From contig CBFFSA010000012.1 of the NCBI GenBank assembly GCA_965644495.1, positions 124,001 to 188,000 on the forward strand: a DNA stretch of 64,000 nucleotides. The letters are read 5' to 3'. Positions 4,562 to 47,927 of this stretch are shown here, in pieces. Position 1 is the stretch's first letter. Every line of letters starts with the position of its first letter. The translations under genes and the position numbers were made by a program. The notes under the pieces are model-generated. The model did no database searches and was not told the origin of the DNA. It saw only the letters and a list, made by a program, of their open reading frames with translations. Origin of the DNA: Perkinsela sp. CCAP 1560/9 (Eukaryota > Protista > Euglenozoa: Kinetoplastea).

Positions 4562-6873
4562 CCGTTACCCCCCCCCTTACTTATCCCGCATTTTGACCCC
4601 AAAATCAGTGATTTTGTGATAAGTAGCGTACCTGGATAAGTAGCGTACCTGGATAAGTAGCGTACCTGAGTAGTGTACCTTAGGTTGGTGAGTGGTTTTC
4701 GGAAGCGTCCTGCCATAAATGAAATTAATAACATAGAGAAAACAAAGTTGTACAACAAACAGAGAGAAGTAATCGAAATATACAAGGTAAATAAAAAACA
4801 ACGCGAGTGTGAAACTTGATTCTGACACAAATGAAGGCTAAGAGAATGTCATGCACATTATAAGAACAACATCATAGAACACGAAAAAAAGTAGTGCTAA
4901 TTACATGACAAGAAATAAGCGGGGGGAAAAAGTGTAGTCGTTGCTGGTTGTTGATGGCATGGAAAAACATGGAAAAAAAACCAGAAAAATATAAGGAATA
5001 ATATTTTTATAGAATGACATTCCGACCAGCCCAGGAGTAAAAGCGAATGAAAAATATTCGATATGCCTCAATTGAATCTATTCTCATATTATAAAATTAT
5101 CATATTACGCCCGAGTGCACACAATTTTATATCAAAAAGCGCTCACTGATCAGTGTCCGCATCAATCACTTCCTCACCGAAAGAAAGCTGCTGAAAAGCA
5201 TTGGAGACGACTTCTGTCTCCAAAGCAGCTTCTACAGGCGTTGCGCCAAGCACAAGGGTACTACCACGTAGAGATTGTACCCGTTGGGGGGAAATTGTTT
5301 CTGCGCCTCGTAGAAGGTGGGATGAGAGCTTGCGTTCAAATTCCACACCATAGGCTTCTACTGCAGGAAAGGACTGTAGCGCTTCAGTGACAAAACGCGT
5401 GATTTTCTGACGCGTGGGGCGGCGAAACCCGTTCTGAGAGGCACGCCAGGTAGAAAATTTATCCCGGTAATGGTGCTTGAACGCTCGGTTGACTGCAACA
5501 TCCATGAGTTGGATGAGCGAGGTGCAACCTGAAGGAATGAACAAGACATCAACCTCTCGCTCACGAAGGTAAGAAAGAATTTCGTGAGTTCGATGAGCGG
5601 CATAGAGGTCAATCACAAGTAAAGTTTGTCGCGGAGGATAACGCGCATGGTCTAACAACTCTCTTTGAAGCCATGCCAGAAAAGAGTCGCCATTTGTCCA
5701 CCCCGATGCAGTTGTGGTGGCAGTACAACGGTACTTTACAGCTGCCGCGTTGATTTCCCGAGAGATGGGCCCTGTGGAGGACTGCGCCTGCCAGATGAGA
5801 TGAGGGGGCAACATGGTGTGGTCCCAAACGCCACCTGTGCCTCGAACGGAGCGCGCCGCGAAAAAAGCTGTCGTCATTTGGCGTTCCGTTCCGGCTGTGC
5901 GAACTCGCACCCGCCGCGTCCCACGAAGTTCAATTGTAACACTACTTACAGGTTCCCACACAACTCCGGTCTCATCACCCGTGAGGATGACAGAGTAACC
6001 TCTGCGATCGACGTTCATCAGAGTCATCATCTCGAGAAAGTTTCGGACCCGTTCATCAGCATCTGTCGGAACGAGTTGAGTGCAACCGTTTACACGACGG
6101 CAACAAACGTTCGCAAATCGACAAAAGCGCTGCCAGAACTTTTCCTTCCCATTCTCTGTGAGTTGACTGAAATGGTCAAATGTCCCAAAGTATTGGAACA
6201 TCATCGATTTCGTGACCCCGACGAGCGCGTCACGCAAGACCGCAATCATGCGAGAACCCTGAGTGTACAATTCCTGATTCTGACGCGGCGGGTGGAATTG
6301 ATAGGAACTTCCGTGGCCAAGGCGCACAAGCCTCATCCACTCTTCCTTCTTCAGGACAATTTTTCGCACCGTGGAAGGAGTGATGCGAAACTCTGCGGCA
6401 ACTGTTGCTTCGGGCTTCATAGCTTCTATTGCAGCACAAATATTAAGTTTCTGCTGGATAGTAAGCTCGACCCGACTTTTCCGTGGACGGTCTTGTTCAA
6501 CTTGAGCATGGGCCAGTAGTTCAACGTTTGGGATAACATTGACTACGGCATTCGGATCCGGAATTACGACAACCGCCTCTTGTGGTAGGAGTGCGTTGCG
6601 GACCTGCCCTGCATGAAAAACCAGCCGATTCAAGTCAGACATTCAGAGAGAGAGAGAGAGAGGGAGGATGAGTTGTAGAAAAAAGTATTCAAGAGTTGTA
6701 GATAGATAAATACTTTAAAATAGCAACGCATTGTACAGCTACCTCAAATCTAAAACAATAAAAAAGTTCGGAAAAAAGGCTAAGGTCCAGGTACGCTACT
6801 TATCCTTGCGGATAAGTAAGGTTTGGGATTTTGTGATAAGTAGCGTACCTGGATAAGTAAGGGGGGGTAACGG
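4562..6873 (-). mobile_element. Complete pogo-like DNA transposon
   Basis: TIRs CCGTTACCCCCCC(CC)TTACTTATCC / GGATAAGTAAGGGGGGGTAACGG, TA target duplication (4560-61, 6874-75), subterminal GATAAGTAGCGTACCTG repeats at both ends, intact transposase. Confidence 0.9.
5143..6642 (-). CDS. pogo/Tigger-family transposase (CENP-B-type HTH + DDE_1, DD35D)
   Basis: LTIQQKLNIC..VAAEFRITPSTVRKI HTH; GDETG, VIDLYAAH, IPSGCTSLIQLMDVAVNRAFK motifs; 35 residues between the 2nd and 3rd Asp. Confidence 0.9.
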   Translation of the reverse strand: MSDLNRLVFHAGQVRNALLPQEAVVVIPDPNAVVNVIPNVELLAHAQVEQDRPRKSRVELTIQQKLNICAAIEAMKPEATVAAEFRITPSTVRKIVLKKEEWMRLVRLGHGSSYQFHPPRQNQELYTQGSRMIAVLRDALVGVTKSMMFQYFGTFDHFSQLTENGKEKFWQRFCRFANVCCRRVNGCTQLVPTDADERVRNFLEMMTLMNVDRRGYSVILTGDETGVVWEPVSSVTIELRGTRRVRVRTAGTERQMTTAFFAARSVRGTGGVWDHTMLPPHLIWQAQSSTGPISREINAAAVKYRCTATTTASGWTNGDSFLAWLQRELLDHARYPPRQTLLVIDLYAAHRTHEILSYLREREVDVLFIPSGCTSLIQLMDVAVNRAFKHHYRDKFSTWRASQNGFRRPTRQKITRFVTEALQSFPAVEAYGVEFERKLSSHLLRGAETISPQRVQSLRGSTLVLGATPVEAALETEVVSNAFQQLSFGEEVIDADTDQ

Positions 6874-25788: not shown

Positions 25789-26595
25789 ATGTCGATTATA
25801 ATGGTTCGGCCTGCTGATGATTCAACTCAATCACAGGTAAGTATTTCGAACCATGCGCGTCCTTCTAAAGTCAGGGGTGCTATGCTACCACAAGAGTACG
25901 AGCTAGTCCGACTATTCGCAGATGTGAAGAAGCCACATTACTCCTGGAATGCCAATATACCTGCGTGTGAGTGGTACGGAATTAAATGGGAGAATCGATA
26001 CACCACACAAGCTTACAAAATCAATTTGAAATGGTTTCGTGTTGGGGGTGAACTCCATTTGACCTATCTACCCTACACTGTCACATATTTCTATGGGGCC
26101 ACTAATGATTTCACTGGTACAGTATGTCTAGATTCACTCCCATCTTCGCTTGAATACCTGAATCTTGCCACAAATCACTTCACAGGGCCAGTAAATTTGA
26201 CATCCTTACCACAAAGTCTTCTTTATCTTTTCCTTGAAGAGAACAATTTTTCAGGGGATATTTGCCTTAATCAATTGCCAAGGCGAATCAGTCACATCTG
26301 TCTCAACAATAATACTCTGACGGGCAAGCTGGAATTGCAGCATTTACCACCTACGCTGCACTATCTTGGTCTTTCGGCGAATTTATTTCGCGGATATTTA
26401 AATTTCGACTCTCTTCATGGAATTCTGAGTCTCTATCTGGACAACAACGAAGCACTTCACGGAGAACTACGCAAAGAAGACCTCCCGTGGGGTGCGTATC
26501 TTTCGGTGAGGGGTACTGGTATCACACTGCACCGGCGGAAAAAGCACGTTTCTCCATCGAAAAGAAAAGTGCATTTTCCCTGCATGAAACTTTGA
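25789..26595 (+). CDS. Leucine-rich repeat protein
   Basis: RPSKVRGAMLPQEYELVRL leader, PACEWYG cap, LRRs; intact paralog of the interrupted copy at 37816-39753. Confidence 0.85.
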   Translation: MSIIMVRPADDSTQSQVSISNHARPSKVRGAMLPQEYELVRLFADVKKPHYSWNANIPACEWYGIKWENRYTTQAYKINLKWFRVGGELHLTYLPYTVTYFYGATNDFTGTVCLDSLPSSLEYLNLATNHFTGPVNLTSLPQSLLYLFLEENNFSGDICLNQLPRRISHICLNNNTLTGKLELQHLPPTLHYLGLSANLFRGYLNFDSLHGILSLYLDNNEALHGELRKEDLPWGAYLSVRGTGITLHRRKKHVSPSKRKVHFPCMKL

Positions 26596-31757: not shown

Positions 31758-32825
31758 CTACTTAACTTCTTCTAGTGTACCTTCTGCTTCTTTCTTTATA
31801 ACGTTTCTTGGTCCTTTCTTTGATCTCTTCGTTTTAAGAAAAGGGAACTCTGCCAGGGCTTCCATGTATTGCATTCGAATATTTTCACGATTTTCTTTGT
31901 CAGTTCGGGAAGGGACCTCAAAACGGCAATTACATGTGCGACCCATGGGCCGAACAAAGGCTCGATTTCTGTCATCGTTGGACCAGAATTGTACGGTCCC
32001 AGGGTCCACCAATATTTTTTCCTCAATGGCGAAGAGAAGACACTCAGCATTCCACATAAGTCTAAATAGTTTCGCGACTACGGCATGAGTTCGCGCACAA
32101 AAGTGCATAAACTGATACCTATCAATGTACGCGTTGAAGCGCTCCACAGTTCCGCGCAGGCATGCGAAATATTGATTTAACTTTGCTTCCTGGGTGGGGA
32201 GCGCTGGTTGTTTGTGCGCACGTTTGTACGGGAATATCGTGTGTGAATTAGCGATATACGCTAAATCTGCGGCAATCAAATCGTGATCGCTGTGTGGCAT
32301 TGGTTCTTTAGTGACCCACGCATGGCTTGGGAGTAATGATGGAACAAAACTCTTAGAATCATGCTGTGCGCCAATAGACGGACCTTGGTACCATATAGGT
32401 TGTCCTGCTACATTGAGATACAACTGCATTTGAAGGATTTTTGCATGATGTTTCCCACTGTAAGTGTCCTTATCTCCTCGTACATATATTGGCGTGCCGT
32501 CCACAATCGTAGTAACACGAGTAAACTGACGGTGCTGATACATGAGGCGACGTTCAGGCTGACTAAAATTTTCCTTGAAACACTGATCAAGGGCCTTATG
32601 CATGTGACGACGAGAAGAAGTGTCAGGTTGCACATTACCGAACCATAATCGCATTATATATCTTATCTGATCATCAGTGCAATTCATGTGCATTGCGATC
32701 AATGCTGCGATAACCCCGTATGTATCCACCAACCCAATCTTGTTCATGAGATAGATAATAAGGGTGGAGGTAAAGTCAGTGAATGCCAAGCATTTATCGT
32801 CAGTGCCAATTGGAAAAGTTTCCAT
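31758..32825 (-). CDS. PIF/Harbinger (ISL2EU-like, DDE_Tnp_4) transposase
   Basis: IVDGTPI, YSGKHH, GAQHDS, AADLAY, NQYFACLRGTVERFN motifs. Confidence 0.8.
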   Translation of the reverse strand: METFPIGTDDKCLAFTDFTSTLIIYLMNKIGLVDTYGVIAALIAMHMNCTDDQIRYIMRLWFGNVQPDTSSRRHMHKALDQCFKENFSQPERRLMYQHRQFTRVTTIVDGTPIYVRGDKDTYSGKHHAKILQMQLYLNVAGQPIWYQGPSIGAQHDSKSFVPSLLPSHAWVTKEPMPHSDHDLIAADLAYIANSHTIFPYKRAHKQPALPTQEAKLNQYFACLRGTVERFNAYIDRYQFMHFCARTHAVVAKLFRLMWNAECLLFAIEEKILVDPGTVQFWSNDDRNRAFVRPMGRTCNCRFEVPSRTDKENRENIRMQYMEALAEFPFLKTKRSKKGPRNVIKKEAEGTLEEVK

Positions 32826-36747: not shown

Positions 36748-37575
36748 ATGGTAACACTATTTCAATACGTTCATAGTGAAGAGTGTCAACCGACGAACCC
36801 TTCCCGTGCAGCACGACCAGCCAAGATACGAGCCGTGTTGCTGCCACAGGAATACGAACTCGTACGCTTATTCGAAGAGGTGGAAAATCCACATCCTTCT
36901 TGGAACGTAGACACCCCCGCCAATGAGTGGGAAGCAATAAGAGGGTCTCCTTTGGGCACAGCCAGTATGTATTACCTGTACAATAGGGAAAAGTACGGAA
37001 ATGCGGTGCGAAAAATTTTTATTAACGGGCGCAAGCTCCGAGGTAAGCTGAATCTTCAGTACCTTCCATACTCTGTTGCTTGCTTTCACGCGGGAAATAA
37101 CTACTTCACAGGCGGAGCACAGCTAGACTCACTTCCCCCGTCCCTTGAATTCTTATACCTTTCTGCAAATCAGTTTGAAGGGTCGATTGATCTTTCTTCA
37201 CTACCGGAAAAGTTACAAATTTTGTCACTTGAACGGAACCATTTTTCTGGAAGTGTTTGTCTTAACCGTTTGCCAAACTCATTAAAACATCTCAATTTGA
37301 TGGAAAATGCTTTTGCAGGAACTCCTGATTTGCAGCAGTTGCCCTCCACGTTGATTTATCTCGATCTCTCAAAAAATAATTTCCACGGGTATGTGATACT
37401 AGATTCTCTTCCTGAAAGTATAAGTTTACACTTGAATAATAACAACGCGATCCACGGGGAAATCGAAGAGAAAATACTTCCTTGGGGTACACACGTCTCA
37501 ACAATGGGAACTAACGTTACTGTTCATAGACGCCCGAATCACGACAAGATCTCAAAACAGAAGGTACGGTTCTGA
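36748..37575 (+). CDS. Leucine-rich repeat protein
   Basis: RPAKIRAVLLPQEYELVRL leader, LRRs; close to the 25789 paralog. Confidence 0.85.
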   Translation: MVTLFQYVHSEECQPTNPSRAARPAKIRAVLLPQEYELVRLFEEVENPHPSWNVDTPANEWEAIRGSPLGTASMYYLYNREKYGNAVRKIFINGRKLRGKLNLQYLPYSVACFHAGNNYFTGGAQLDSLPPSLEFLYLSANQFEGSIDLSSLPEKLQILSLERNHFSGSVCLNRLPNSLKHLNLMENAFAGTPDLQQLPSTLIYLDLSKNNFHGYVILDSLPESISLHLNNNNAIHGEIEEKILPWGTHVSTMGTNVTVHRRPNHDKISKQKVRF

Positions 37576-37589
37576 ACGACACTGACCTA

Positions 37590-37770
37590 CAGTCAGTAAA
37601 AAAACACTTTCCAAATGTTTCGAATTTTTTTCTTTTGTACAGCCATAGATTCAATACTAGTATCAGCGTTGCGCTGGTAATGTGTGCTAGTAGTGTAGGC
37701 ATGAGTGTTACTTAATAGTACTCATAGTTCATCTCAGTTCGCTCTACCAAAGGATTAAGAATGAATTAAA
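37590..37770. mobile_element. Solo terminal fragment of the Tc1-like element
   Basis: Homologous to ~30066-30240, begins TA|CAGTCAG. Confidence 0.65.
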
Positions 37771-38119
37771 CAAATAGTCGAAAAAAGCACTTTATCACAG
37801 TTGATCTTCTGAGAAATGTCAATTACAATGGTTTGGCCTGCTGATGATTCAACTCAATCACAGGTAAGTATTTCGAACCATGCGCGTCCTTCTAAAGTCA
37901 GGGGTGCTATGCTACCGCAAGAGTACGAGCTAGTCCGACTATTCGCAGATGTGAAGAAGCCACATTACTCCTGGAATGTCAATACCCCTGCGTGTGAGTG
38001 GTACGGAATTAAATGGGAGAATCGATACAGCACACAAGTCTACAAAATCAATTTGAAATGGTTCCGCGTTGGGGGTAAACTCCATTTGACGTATCTACCC
38101 TACACTGTCACATATTTCT

Positions 38120-39250
38120 AAAGATACAGTTTCTTACAATAAAGATACAGTTTATTACCAGATACAGTTTATTACAATAAAGATACAGTTTCTGTACCTT
38201 GTTGGTACATTTTCCCTTTAGTTCATCTTTTCTTTCCCCGGCAACGGGCATAATCTTACTGTTTTATATGCCCGTTGCCGGCCGGCACTAAGGCCGAAAC
38301 TGTCCCTCTTTCTCGGAGAAGTAGGGGACGCGCTTCCACCCCATCACCCCTCCCCGGCTCACTCCTTGAGTGGGTTTTCTTCCCTCCCCGGCTTTCTTCC
38401 CTTCGCGCCCTTTTCTTCCCGGGGAGCCATGCGCCATGGTGGCCTCCCTTGAGGACCACTGGGCGTGGCTCTGCCTCGTCTTATCGCGAGGCAGCGGTCG
38501 GTTGCAGTGCGCCCCTCCGGCTGCGTAAAGAGAGGGCGAGTTGCCTGGACCCCCTCTACCGACAGTCCGAGCTAAACCCCCTTGGTGCGACATCCGTCAA
38601 TACGGAATGTGCCGATGATATCGGCTGTCGCATCAAGGGCTGTATCTCTGCGCCAACGAGCGCATGAACATCAAAAGATACAGTTTCTGTACCTTGTTGT
38701 ACTTTTTCCTTAGTTCATCCTTTCTTTCCCCGGCAACGGGCATACTCTTACTGTATTTTCATGCCCGTTGCCGGCCGGCACTAAGGTCGGAACTGTCCCT
38801 CTTGTCGCTGAAGCAGGGGACGCGCTTTCACCACTTCACCCCTCCCCGACTCACTCCCCTGGAGTGAGTGTGCTTCCCCCTCTCGGCTTTTTTTCGACTT
38901 GCCTTTTTCCTCTCCGAGAGGGCCATGCGTCACGGTGGCCTCCCTTGAGGACCACTAGACGTGTCCTCCGCCGACGAGACTCGGCTCTCTGCACCTGGCG
39001 GTCGCCCAGCTCTCCGCACCTCGGCTCTGTCGCAGCTCTCTGCACCCGGATTGCCCCCGAAACTGTAATATGGGGATTACGCATCCGGCTCTCTGCACCT
39101 GCACATGACAACCGAGCTCTCTGCACCTGGGACGTCAGCTCTCCGCACCCGCACACCTCCGGCGAGGACGAAACCTCACATGATCCACCCGTCGTATGCG
39201 GGATAAGGACATGGTGAGCAAATCTCTGCACTATAAGTGCATGATAAAAC
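38120..39250 (+). mobile_element. SL-headed structured element, two head-to-tail monomers
   Basis: Boundaries defined by the empty paralog; monomers at ~38171-38672 and 38673-39250 share their 5' ~290 bp and a 3' hairpin motif. Confidence 0.8.
38171..38204 (+). ncRNA. Spliced-leader (mini-exon)-like sequence
   Basis: ATAAAGATACAGTTTCTGTACCTTGTTG|GT matches the conserved kinetoplastid SL 3' half (CAGTTTCTGTAC..TTG followed by GT); second copy at 38673-38699. No canonical AACTAACGCT 5' end seen. Confidence 0.7.
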
Positions 39251-40053
39251 ACGGGGCCACTAATGATTTTACTGGTACAGTATGTCTAGATTCACTCCCA
39301 TCTTCGCTTGAATACCTGAATCTTGCCACAAATCACTTCACAGGGCCAGTAAATTTGACATCCTTAACACAAAGTCTTCTTTATCTTTACCTTGAAGAGA
39401 ACAATTTTTCAGGGGATATTTGCCTTAGTCAATTGCCAAGGCGAATCAGTCACATCTGTCTCAACAATAATACTCTGACGGGCAAGCTGGAATTGCAGCA
39501 TTTACCACCTACGCTGCACTATCTTGGCCTTTCGGCGAATTTATTTCGCGGATATTTAAATTTCGACTCTCTTCATGGAATTCTGAGTCTCTATCTGGAC
39601 AACAACGAAGCACTTCACGGAGAACTACGCAAAGAAGACCTCCCGTGGGGTGCGTATCTTTCGGTGAGGGGTACTGGTATCACACTGCACCGGCGAAAAG
39701 AGCTTGCTTATCCATCGAAAAGAAAAGTACATTTTCCTTGCATGAAACTTTGACTGATTTAAATGATTTCCTGAATTGAGTTACTCAGATTAAACGGGGA
39801 CCCGGGGTAACATACTTGTAGCACCATAACATACCAGGGCCTATGTTACCGGGTGGTATCGTGAGCAAGGGGTAGATAACATACCCACCTCTGAATTTCG
39901 GGATTTCGTATGAAAACGACTTCCGCATCGATTAGGTGGTTAAAGGGTTACTTCATAACATTTATGATACTGATTTGCATTTATGGTCACTATTATCCGA
40001 AACATCTATCATTTGCGTTAGTTGTACAGAATTGATATTCTCTTACGTATTCA

Positions 40054-41220
40054 ATGGAGAGCCCTCCCTACAAACGTGCAAGATTGGGTAAGGTGCGTGG
40101 CGCGCTGCTTTGCCAGGAGTCCGAGCTTTCCATTTTCATTAGTAATATTGCTCATACACACGCTTCATGGAATCAGTCACAATCGTGCTGTAGTTGGAAA
40201 GGAATTCATTGCGATGTAAAAAATACGGCACGGGGACTCTCCTGGAATGCTCTGTCACTGCGTGGCAACTTTAGTTGGCATCATTTACCTAATAGTATCA
40301 AAACTTTTTCTTGTTTTTCAAATCCGGAGTTGCAAGGCTTAATACCAACTGACGCTTTGCCTCGAAACTTGACGACGTTTTTTGTTTCAGATTGCCACTT
40401 TAGTGGAAATTTTGTGATGCGAGACCTACCTTCGGATCTCCTACACCTAGACCTTGCGAATAACGGATGCTCGGGGCAGTTTGCATTTACTGAGATTCCA
40501 CGCGCTCTTCGAACATTTCACATTGTTGATAACCAGTTTAACGGCTTTTTCACCGATTGGAACGAATTACCAAGCAACCTAAACTCACTTGAATTGAATC
40601 GGAATAATTTTTACGGTACAGTCGATCTTTCCATGATTCGTGATGTCGCACCAGTGCTCAATTACTTGGATTTAAGCTCAAATAGATTTTCCGGGAATCT
40701 AGATCTCGAAAACCTACCTCATACTATGGCTGAACTTAACCTTGGGTACAACCAATTCACCGGAGAAGTAGTGTTGAGCAATCTACCGCAGAGACTTCTA
40801 GATCTGCGACTAATGAATAACCTATTAATCGGGGAAACAATGTTTTGTGGGCTTCCTCCGAGCTTGCAGAGGCTTGATTTGAGTAAAAATATTTTCCAAG
40901 GTAATGTTGATCTGAGCAGCCTTCCACTCAGTCTCATATATATTGACATAAGCCACAACGAATTTAGTGGCCTACTTGACGTGAGAAAACTTCCGCAACG
41001 TCTGCAAATTATTAATGTTAGTCATAACAAATTTCACGGAGAACTTGATTGGAAACATTTTCCTGAAGAACTAGAAATACTTTTTCTACAGAACAACAGC
41101 TTTGAAGGAGGTTTCGTACTCGAGCAGCTACCACCGTTTTTAGTAGAAATCAATATTAGGAACAACTTGTTTTCAGCTGATTTATGTGAACGTGTTGAGG
41201 AGCATGTGGCAAACGCCTGA
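40054..41220 (+). CDS. Leucine-rich repeat protein (long)
   Basis: RLGKVRGALLCQESEL leader, CCSWKGIHC cap, about 12 LRRs. Confidence 0.9.
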   Translation: MESPPYKRARLGKVRGALLCQESELSIFISNIAHTHASWNQSQSCCSWKGIHCDVKNTARGLSWNALSLRGNFSWHHLPNSIKTFSCFSNPELQGLIPTDALPRNLTTFFVSDCHFSGNFVMRDLPSDLLHLDLANNGCSGQFAFTEIPRALRTFHIVDNQFNGFFTDWNELPSNLNSLELNRNNFYGTVDLSMIRDVAPVLNYLDLSSNRFSGNLDLENLPHTMAELNLGYNQFTGEVVLSNLPQRLLDLRLMNNLLIGETMFCGLPPSLQRLDLSKNIFQGNVDLSSLPLSLIYIDISHNEFSGLLDVRKLPQRLQIINVSHNKFHGELDWKHFPEELEILFLQNNSFEGGFVLEQLPPFLVEINIRNNLFSADLCERVEEHVANA

Positions 41221-46496: not shown

Positions 46497-47927
46497 ATGC
46501 CCCTTGCCTTGGCGCACACTGTTCAAAAACTCGAAAAAAGAAAACGTGTACAACCTTGTTACACGAAAGAGCAAAAGATGGAGTTCGCACGGAAAAGTAA
46601 TGCTTATCCAAATACCGAACAAGCTGCAAGAGCACTTGGTGTGTCAAGTACCGCTCTTCGAGAATGGAGAGCAGGTATAGTGAATCCCGTAGCTTGTTTC
46701 TCGAGAGAGAGAAAACTCGACTTTGTTGAACAGACGAAAAAATACGCAAAACTATCAGATGCTGCTAAAGCCTTGGGTATACCTGCTAAGACTCTCTCAA
46801 AGTGGCGCGTGGATCAAAATGGCGCGAATCTTTTAGGAAGTACTGCAAGGGATCGATCGGGCCCTGACAACTCTTGTCTCCCTAAGTCTTCCTCTCCACC
46901 CCAGAAATACAATACAAAGACGCATTCTTCATCTGTTTCTCAAAGTGAGTGCAATACTGAAGGCAATGTGAAGCCCGCAGAAAACAATTGCTATACTCAT
47001 GAAATATTTCAAAATGGCCCTTTGGAAGATGCAACACGCTCTTCTTTCGACACGCATGTCGAGGCTCCCAACCATTACCAAAGTTTGATTCAGTCGGCGG
47101 AACACGTTGAAATTCCATGGCTTCTGCCTGAAATAAATCCCGAATTAGTGCGCAGATTTAAAAACTACAACGAACAGCAAGTTTTTGACCACGTAGACGA
47201 TTTGATTGAAGAAGGAGAGCGAATCCTTCAGGGCTTGGAGGAACAGAAATTACAAGAATTGGCGCTCTTCTGGTCGCCTCACCGAAAATTGCGGTATATA
47301 CTTTGGGAAACCCTCGCGCCTCGCATTTTGTTAGAATCCCTTCACAAGGCCTATGGCTATCATCTTGAGCTAAAGGAGTTCGAGGAACTGTACCACGCGT
47401 CCATTCGAAACACATGGCCCTGGCTTCTCTCCTATCCCTACTCTGTTCGTAGAGATGTTCTTTTCTGGTGTGGAGATGTCACCGACGTGGACTGTAAACT
47501 TCGAGGCTATATGGAATACACGTATTACTTGTACCAGCGAAAAGGGGTATTGTACCCCGTAAATAAGAAAACAGAACTAAAACAAGAAACTGAAAATGAT
47601 ATGAATAATGCATCCGTCCTGTCCTCACAAACACTTGAGGATACGTTGCGTCCTTTTAGGGGTTCCGAACCTCCAACGGATCTTTGGGACTTTTCTTGTC
47701 TAGAAACTCATAGTGATATGGCGGAGCGAGTTCAAACAGAGGCAGAATTCAATGGTTTTCAGAAAAAATGGCACATTGAAATGGCACGAGCCTACTGGAG
47801 ACTGTTTGATCGGTCTCCAGTAGGCTCGTGCCATTTCAATGTGCCATTTTTTCTGAAAACCATTGAATTCTGCCTCTGTTTGAACTCTGAGAATGATACT
47901 CTCCGTTTTTTGGGTATACGTGCGTAA
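46497..47927 (+). CDS. Protein with two N-terminal HTH repeats (psq/Brinker/transposase-type)
   Basis: YTKEQKMEF..AARALGVSSTALREWR and FSRERKLDF..AAKALGIPAKTLSKWR; C-terminus is formed by an inverted duplication. Confidence 0.6.
   Translation: MPLALAHTVQKLEKRKRVQPCYTKEQKMEFARKSNAYPNTEQAARALGVSSTALREWRAGIVNPVACFSRERKLDFVEQTKKYAKLSDAAKALGIPAKTLSKWRVDQNGANLLGSTARDRSGPDNSCLPKSSSPPQKYNTKTHSSSVSQSECNTEGNVKPAENNCYTHEIFQNGPLEDATRSSFDTHVEAPNHYQSLIQSAEHVEIPWLLPEINPELVRRFKNYNEQQVFDHVDDLIEEGERILQGLEEQKLQELALFWSPHRKLRYILWETLAPRILLESLHKAYGYHLELKEFEELYHASIRNTWPWLLSYPYSVRRDVLFWCGDVTDVDCKLRGYMEYTYYLYQRKGVLYPVNKKTELKQETENDMNNASVLSSQTLEDTLRPFRGSEPPTDLWDFSCLETHSDMAERVQTEAEFNGFQKKWHIEMARAYWRLFDRSPVGSCHFNVPFFLKTIEFCLCLNSENDTLRFLGIRA
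47728..47887. repeat. Perfect inverted repeat, 75-bp arms, 10-nt loop
   Basis: 47728-47802 is the exact reverse complement of 47813-47887. Confidence 0.95.

Follow-up and report, generated by a model that had tools for sequence, protein, structure and literature searches.

A family of non-coding retroposons headed by part of the spliced leader in Perkinsela sp. CCAP 1560/9 and its probable mobilisation by R2-like LINEs

An insertion of 1.13 kb splits a small leucine-rich repeat (LRR) gene of the kinetoplastid Perkinsela sp. CCAP 1560/9, at positions 38120–39250 of a 64,000-nucleotide stretch of DNA referred to here as the window (assembly GCA_965644495.1, contig CBFFSA010000012.1, positions 124,001 to 188,000 of the forward strand). 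The insertion contains two related units, m1 and m2, each opening with a part of the spliced leader (SL) of the host. Our analysis indicates that both are non-coding retroposons, probably of a kind resembling short interspersed elements (SINEs) or short internally deleted elements (SIDEs), copied in trans by long interspersed elements (LINEs) of the R2 superfamily, which carry a reverse transcriptase (RT), a CCHC motif and a restriction-like endonuclease (RLE); the leader head would be a relic, and the pair the outcome of two hits or of a template jump. An initial annotation, made from the letters of this DNA alone, had taken the insertion for a head-to-tail dimer of one element. m1 and m2 are instead members of two different subfamilies that move independently, occur independently of each other and differ in their 3′ modules.

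Results

The limits of the insertion follow from comparison with an intact paralog in the same window, a single open reading frame (ORF) of 268 aa at 25789–26595 (+) that serves as the empty-site reference. When the flanks (37788–38135 plus 39236–39760) were aligned with it, a clean insert appeared that begins at 38120 or 38121 and ends at 39250, the left flank matching up to ...CACATATTTCT(A) and the right flank resuming from (T/C)GGGGCCACTAATGATTT. One A is assignable to either side, leaving an ambiguity of 0–1 bp, and the first base beyond it is T in the paralog and C in the interrupted gene, a synonymous difference (TAT/TAC) that keeps a Tyr codon. With one ambiguous A and a synonymous change there is therefore no target-site duplication (TSD), no deletion and no poly(A) at the insert, which bears out the clean ~1.13-kb insertion described initially. 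The 5′ half of the gene lies at 37816–38120 (+), where ORF 37816–38121 stops within the first codons of the insert. The 3′ half, at 39251–39753 (+), is open as the in-frame part of ORF 39196–39753 and starts at ..GATNDFTG.. of an LRR unit, the usual landing phase of the m1/m2 family. That both halves are still open points to a recent insertion. An intron in this gene, considered at a GTAAGT near ~37866, was ruled out, the paralog being one open frame.

Genome counts and comparisons given hereafter cover the 21-Mb assembly, and readings of flanks and ends cover 72 retrieved loci (L numbers). From 5′ to 3′, the insert consists of partial-leader stutters, m1 and m2. The stutters, read directly at 38120–38178 (+), are three degenerate partial copies of SL nt ~11/13–31 (21, 19 and 19 nt) with the same restart point; similar 5′ stutters, restarting at leader nt 11–13, occur in L031, L042, L046 and L020. 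By sequence comparison m1 (~38177–38676, +) is a non-autonomous retroposon of ~500 bp, the short form of a ~575-bp subfamily, built of a head of SL nt 11–38, a folded head body of ~265 nt in common with m2, an m1-specific 3′ module and the tail ACATCAAAA. Its leader part in the window, SL nt 13–38 at 38179–38204 (+), continues into GTAC where an SL RNA gene has the intron start GTATGAGAAGC. A long head hairpin (P4; 38236–38285, +), recognised by fold comparison, is kept across subfamilies with a compensatory A-U/C-G pair, and a 3′ box at 38644–38676 (+) comprises ATCTC, the stem TGCGC/GCGCA, TGA and the tail (ATCTC-hairpin-TGA core at 38645–38667). m2 (38674–39250, +) is likewise a non-autonomous retroposon, 577 bp long, and represents another, younger subfamily; it is 99% identical to many solo copies. 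It joins a head of SL nt 13–38, in which one G is absent at the SL/GTAC joint, to the common head body and an m2-specific 3′ module; its P4, also placed by fold comparison, lies at 38738–38788 (+). Direct reading of this module revealed six spaced RGCTCTCYGCACC repeats (38983–39152, +), which resemble the 5′ half of the 3′ box (TCTCTGCAC), and the box itself at 39222–39250 (+) comprises ATCTC, the stem TGCACT/AGTGCA, TGA and the tail TAAAAC (core at 39223–39244).

The sequence AAAGATACAGTTTCTGTACCTTGTTG opens both units (38179–38204 in m1, 38674–38699 in m2), and over ~290 bp of 5′ sequence they are 84% identical, whereas their 3′ parts differ. Hence the two diverged monomers of the initial annotation stand as two related units and fall as monomers of one element, each subfamily being dispersed on its own. 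The boundary of m1 has also shifted: solo copies define its end as ...TGAACATCAAAA, so that the tail ACATCAAAA overlaps the first AAA of m2 by 3 nt (38674–38676), and the three stutters (38120–38178) lie upstream of the unit. As judged from L038, L041, L046 and others, m1 elements occur in forms of ~575 bp, with a 67-nt internal tandem duplication, and of ~500 bp; the m1 of the window has the short form, yet its identity to long-form copies (up to 98.7%) exceeds that to the other short copies (96–97%).

A search with the full insert gave 47 scored places among 403 candidates, with m1-type and m2-type copies occurring apart, some of them 5′-truncated (at query positions 583, 598, 664 and 696) and the m2 copies mostly 97–99% identical. 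The word made of the leader end plus GGT occurs 268 times in the genome and the exact 3′ box pattern 112 times, against none in the reversed control for either, so that chance is no explanation, and the common start and ATCTC-hairpin-TGA end claimed for both units could be read in each of them. Pattern counts gave 53 occurrences of the exact head-body start and ~97 of the intact long head hairpin, with 0 in the reversed controls. The heads fall into at least five subfamilies with a common head and differing 3′ modules, and no TSD was seen at the 31 full copies examined. m1 and m2 thus belong to a dispersed, young and recently mobile family of non-coding retroposons; recent mobility with the knockout of an LRR gene, as first surmised, agrees with the near-identical dispersed copies and the two open gene halves.

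Coding capacity was rightly doubted in the initial annotation of these non-autonomous units. No ATG-initiated ORF on the + strand of m1 or m2 exceeds 67 aa, the longest frames have no Pfam match, and the ‘ORF’ shared by both units shows 42% protein identity where the DNA is 84% identical, the frame not being conserved. In an Rfam search over 37000–40500 the insert matched none of the ribozyme, SL, tRNA, 7SL and 5S families. The head is not that of a classical SINE, with a tRNA, 7SL or 5S origin and an internal Pol III promoter, and runs of TTTT, which act as Pol III terminators, occur several times in its first 100 nt.

A strict search for the 3′ box (TCTC, a perfect stem of at least 5 bp, TGA) in the 72 loci returned 48 sites, all of them element ends. 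Five differing stems were found, all still complementary: those of m1 (TGCGC/GCGCA) and m2 (TGCACT/AGTGCA), those of LINEs in L005, L041 and L072 (TGTAGAA/TTCTACA) and in L043 (TAGTGA/TCACTA), and that of an element in L055 (TACAGG/CCTGTA). When ten ends were aligned, all 38 cells of the four outer pairs proved complementary, three of these four pairs had undergone double changes, and none of 500 shuffles attained the covariation score. The LINE copies in L005, L041, L043 and L072 end in this ATCTC-hairpin-TGA box ~100 nt past their ORF, with (TA)n or (TG)n as the tail. By family, LINE tails are (TA)n in L005/L041/L072, (TG)n in L043 and (ATC)n in L062–L064, the box being present in the first two only. 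The best solved relatives of the LINE protein are R2 proteins (8gh6, 1.7e-30), and its C-terminal CCHC plus endonuclease region aligns to R2 residues 980–1152. Among ~1072 RT candidates in the genome, the (TA)n LINE family accounts for five exact box copies, each downstream of an RT match. Of the enzymes whose genes the initial annotation proposed to look for in longer relatives, RT is encoded by these LINEs with the same 3′ box; no recombinase or Rep ORF was recognised in the units themselves. Two apparent links between the units and RT genes were rejected. A hairpin at C2:1133552, near an RT domain and first taken as the LINE's own end, is that of an m1 copy whose head lies at C2:1134070, and an m1 lying ~1.5 kb past RT domains in C1 is not part of the LINE, which ends before it with its own box and (TA)n or (TG)n.

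Elements and LINE also share a target, both inserting in sense at one phase of an LRR coding motif. Within 16 codons of the 3′ flank, in element orientation, a strict LxxNxLxG was found at 9 of 42 ends, compared with 34 of 2880 sites drawn at random from the same set of loci. A looser LRR match, judged by eye and including the GATNDFTG of the window, is present in ~40% of 3′ flanks, always in sense, and the Asn codon falls ~9–15 nt past the element junction. Two LINE sites are informative for target: in L005 the LINE sits at the same LRR phase, one LRR unit upstream of an m2, and in L041 it directly precedes an m1 at an LRR site. Insertion of the CRE/SLACS kind, into SL RNA genes and with poly(A) and TSD, does not describe these elements, the empty site being LRR coding sequence without leader. 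Dispersed and partly 5′-truncated copies, together with RT-encoding R2-like LINEs having the same 3′ box and target, favour the SL-SINE-like retroposon among the origins entertained at the outset.

The host leader (AACTTTAACGATAAAGATACAGTTTCTGTACCTTGTTG) is joined to GTATGAGAAGC at just 7 genome loci, which we take to be the SL RNA genes, a GTATGAGAAGC start being typical of kinetoplastid SL RNA introns; two of them (L033/L034, G000:C1:~661300–661650) lie 297 bp apart and adjoin a 5S rRNA gene (RF00001, 99 bits). The leader obtained from these loci matches the element head, as the initial reading required. Elements carry it from nt 8–20 onward (mode 11–13), and one of the 31 full copies starts at nt 3. 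Past the leader they read GTAC(A/T)TTTT in place of the SL intron, the likeness to the gene ending 3 nt into the intron. Without leader nt 1–10 and without intron, the units are distinct from the ordinary SL RNA gene repeat, whose true genes continue differently after the leader. Derivation from the SL RNA gene itself, one sense of the annotation's ‘SL-derived’, did not emerge from the comparison, in which the common part amounts to exon nt ~11–38 plus GTA.

Several features point to the RNA level. In every copy the last leader base is nt 38, which is the trans-splice junction and the end expected of an SL-relic retrocopy. Thirteen copies lack exactly the stretch GTAC...polypyrimidine-AG, so that the leader abuts TTCATC right after the polypyrimidine-AG position. 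Copies of this kind have heads of both the m1 type (TTCATCTTTTC) and the m2 type (TTCATCCTTTC, TTAATCC), the type being confirmed by hairpins at matching distances; the stretch was therefore removed at least twice, at the RNA level. A leaderless source with an AG acceptor was sought among exact matches, and none of the 53 exact head-body starts has anything but leader in front of it; a leaderless master gene is therefore not evident. The joint TTG|GTAC has no AG, and ordinary trans-splicing therefore cannot re-make it. Only the mRNA-borne part of the exon is present in the head, which points to a leader-bearing RNA. On the best reading, an ancestral RNA carried the leader and passed it on, and the SL head is what remains of it, incorporated by now in a conserved 5′ fold.

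Leader copies are not confined to this family. Near-full leader sequence occurs in 245 genome copies, compared with the 7 SL RNA genes, and some of the retrieved loci (L011/12, L038, L060 and L069) have unrelated sequences attached to nt 38 of the full leader. L011 reads as G, full leader nt 1–38, ~640 nt and A13, a copy resembling a processed mRNA, and the chain in L011/L012 (G000:C29, − strand, locus ~520–1500) consists of this A13 retrocopy, ~300 nt of other sequence and an m2 without its first 28 nt. Two copies of this whole chain lie 6.7 kb apart, with 99.8% identity. Elsewhere, at G000:C1:2477632–2492910, near-full leader copies recur at a spacing of 5092–5093 bp, suggestive of an SL-headed element of ~5.1 kb arrayed in tandem. 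The near-full leader heads in L014 (~706), L038 (~2611), L060 and L069 (~2612) start at nt 3 with T or TT in place of the AA of leader nt 1–2, a hint from four cases only that modified cap-proximal bases may have been misread.

The head is strongly folded (z −5.5 and −6.2). Among nine subfamily representatives, leader nt 19–26 (ACAGTTTC) face a conserved GRAACTGT ~105 nt downstream, with 87.5% of cells paired, the GTACC of the leader pairs with GGTAC in 9/9 (100% of cells), and the long head hairpin is 97.9% paired with one compensatory A-U/C-G position. The order of strands fits the P1-P2-P3-P1′-P4-P2′ arrangement of ribozymes like that of hepatitis delta virus (HDV), with P2 paired in 87.5%, P3 in 100% (and atypically long), P4 in 97.9% and P1 weakly, in 68.5% of cells; no Rfam ribozyme was recognised.

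The window further contains ORFs with DNA-transposase domains (DDE_1 plus CENP-B_N, DDE_Tnp_4 and HTH_Tnp_1) at 5143–6642 (−), 31758–32825 (−) and 46497–47927 (+); DNA transposons therefore coexist with the retroelements.

Discussion

The shared 3′ box and target phase lead us to infer that m1 and m2 are mobilised in trans by the R2-like LINEs. A sense copy inside a transcribed LRR gene would be co-transcribed with that gene. The LINE protein would then bind the 3′ box, that is, ATCTC, a hairpin kept in shape and not in sequence, TGA and a short A-rich tail, nick the DNA at a fixed phase of the LRR motif and prime reverse transcription there, which would leave neither poly(A) nor TSD. The cDNA would run to the RNA 5′ end at about nt 11–13 of the DNA-encoded partial leader. 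The pair in the window would result from two successive hits on one LRR site, m1 arriving first and the younger m2 next, between the m1 tail and the unchanged 3′ flank.

Two successive hits are the most likely origin of the pair, about twice as likely as a single event with a template jump. Five head-to-tail stacks were seen, in the window, L002, L007/L009 (three elements), L014 and L041 (LINE then m1). In all five the upstream partner has a complete and exact tail and the 3′ flank is LRR sequence, while the downstream partner may be 5′-truncated. Divergence from relatives amounts to 1.3–4% for m1 and 0.5–1% for m2. In L043, an m1 is found inside the (TG)n tail of a LINE.

The single event remains a less likely but serious competitor. 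Target-primed reverse transcription would have begun on m2 RNA, the RT would then have jumped to the 3′ end of an m1 RNA, and the AAA at 38674–38676 would mark the jump. The R2 RT is known to switch templates in vitro and in vivo, with snU12 and tRNA sequence found at R2 5′ ends (PMC3414825). The stutters at the 5′ junction in the window look like repeated jumps at an RNA end, the downstream members of L007/L009 are truncated internally (at ~nt 31 and ~nt 145) and each abuts a complete upstream tail, and the chain in L011/L012 links a truncated m2 to copies of other RNAs, including the SL...A13 retrocopy. The upstream partners, however, end at the exact canonical tail, as expected of priming positioned by a protein and not of a co-transcript with an undefined 3′ end; each of the five stacks occupies an LRR site whose 3′ flank is intact, and m1 is more diverged from its relatives than m2. 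These three observations lean against the jump without being decisive.

Some points weigh against the scheme of R2-driven copying as a whole. The insertion, the family, the common 3′ box, the R2-like character of the LINEs and the target phase are established by the sequence comparisons; transcription of the elements, their co-transcription with the host gene and the position of the RNA 5′ end are deduced from them. The order of insertion is argued weakly, from the divergence of m1 and m2 and from the five stacks at LRR sites (p ~0.01 if 40% is the background rate). No LINE was found with the exact m1 or m2 hairpin, and the LINE family with the closest box has only five exact copies. A head hairpin of the m type, 1–4.5 kb upstream of the RT, was seen in 0 of the top-150 RT matches, so that the 3′ box may be all that the elements have in common with their drivers. 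Nor does a start of the family at SL nt ~11–13, as against nt 3 in ~240 other SL-headed copies, follow from the scheme.

Regarding that start, the restarting of stutters at leader nt 11–13 suggests that the template RNA ends there, and the most economical idea is that a promoter or processing signal in the head sets the RNA 5′ end. A more daring proposal, which we regard as rather unlikely, is that the partial leader is a working 5′ module that makes an RNA 5′ end at SL nt ~11–13, through an internal promoter or self-cleavage of the co-transcript, the nascent cDNA end being able to switch onto any leader-bearing RNA and thereby to repair or extend shortened heads. If true, the universal mRNA leader would be a self-renewing 5′ handle for the element, which, riding on R2-like LINEs, would thereby home to a repeat motif of protein-coding genes and not to rDNA.

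It is somewhat less likely still that the head came from the SL RNA gene itself, as exon plus splice donor in the manner of snRNA-headed SINEs, and not from a trans-spliced RNA. The GTAC that follows the leader in the elements could be set beside the GTAT of the SL RNA intron, the pairing of the leader GTACC with GGTAC in all nine subfamily representatives resembles the exon/intron stem of SL RNA, and SINEU elements document repeated addition of snRNA heads to a SINE (PMC4494074). Against this, likeness to the gene ends after 3 nt of intron, many unrelated genome sequences are joined to the leader exactly at nt 38, as by trans-splicing, and the GTAC...AG stretch was lost at least twice at the RNA level. 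Neither SL RNA gene variants with an intron running into the head body nor a leaderless acceptor was found among exact matches.

The leader could alternatively be a landing site, LINEs of the SLACS/CRE kind cutting it near nt 11–12 and new copies piling up in front of old heads, but this is very improbable. Head-to-tail stacks are indeed common, and the elements begin near SL nt 11–13, close to the insertion site of SLACS, CZAR and CRE, which we take to lie between leader nt 11 and 12. Such LINEs insert at one fixed position in SL RNA genes (PMC12278014). The empty paralogous site without leader sequence already contradicts the idea; moreover, solo copies have unrelated 5′ flanks, the cut in the downstream element of a stack often falls far into the leader or past it (L007/L009), and the conserved feature of the target is the LRR motif in the 3′ flank. 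Least probable of all, to the point of being negligible, is a tandem repeat, satellite, rolling-circle or recombinase-borne element acting at the DNA level, among which the initial annotation had listed structured satellite RNA and rolling-circle options: the head-to-tail arrangement without TSD would suit it, but the units differ (84% in the head only, with distinct 3′ modules), stand singly at dozens of loci, some of them 5′-truncated, have neither terminal inverted repeats nor a Rep, recombinase or other ORF with a family match, and bear the RNA-level signs of a 5′ leader and of exact GTAC...polypyrimidine-AG loss in 13 copies.

As putative R2-driven riders, m1 and m2 are close in habit to the SIDEs of R2 (Eickbush & Eickbush 2012, PMC3414825), which are likewise short non-coding riders of an RLE LINE with a recognised structured 3′ end, no poly(A) and variable 5′ junctions, and which use the fixed target of their master by sense insertion into a transcribed multicopy sequence. 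SIDEs, however, keep the 5′ HDV-like ribozyme of the master and sit in 28S rDNA, whereas the elements described here have a partial leader and a folded head of their own, an LRR motif as target and no detected ribozyme. SINEU elements (U1/U2 snRNA heads, Tx1-Mar; Kojima 2015, PMC4494074) similarly have a head from a splicing RNA and not from tRNA, 7SL or 5S, with recurrent 5′ additions, and their partnership with a LINE was likewise deduced from a common unusual target preference; their heads derive from the body of snRNA genes and their driver is Tx1, in contrast with the mRNA-borne exon part found and the R2-like driver proposed here. In the SL-relic retrogenes of dinoflagellates (for example PMC6050394, PMC12014239), a 5′ leader encoded in DNA also marks the copying of trans-spliced RNA, and repeated processing alters the junctions, but these are cellular genes with relics stacked via an AG inside the leader, unlike a mobile non-coding family with a 3′ box and a target.

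Within kinetoplastids, the CRE clade (SLACS, CZAR, CRE1/2; PMC12278014) likewise consists of RLE-bearing LINEs tied to the spliced leader. Its members target SL RNA genes and end in poly(A), whereas the elements here bear their own 5′ leader, target LRR sequence and end in a hairpin box. RIME, NARTc and SIDER, relatives of ingi/L1Tc in trypanosomatids, are as well short non-autonomous retroposons whose conserved 5′ module defines the RNA 5′ end, and differ (PMC8190864, PMC4035085) in having the 77-nt Pr77 promoter/HDV-like ribozyme, A-rich tails, TSDs and an APE-type LINE, none of which was seen here. The only kinetoplastid retroelement clades in the literature searched are ingi, CRE, VIPER and TATE. 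None of the known systems compared combines a leader head, a hairpin 3′ box and an LRR-motif target; such elements go unmentioned in a trypanosomatid mobilome survey and in the Diplonema genome paper, and neither a description of them nor a match to the exact 19-nt leader end was found in the literature searched.

The family poses a puzzle of its own, namely the making of a defined RNA 5′ end inside a copy of the leader. For retroelement biology, ATCTC-hairpin-TGA provides a compact, putative 3′ recognition box with natural covariation. The elements link SL trans-splicing and target-primed retrotransposition of the R2 type with a protein-coding LRR repeat as a multicopy ‘safe’ target, three matters ordinarily found apart, and kinetoplastids gain with them a young and abundant family of riders that breaks, and perhaps reshuffles, LRR genes of the surface type.

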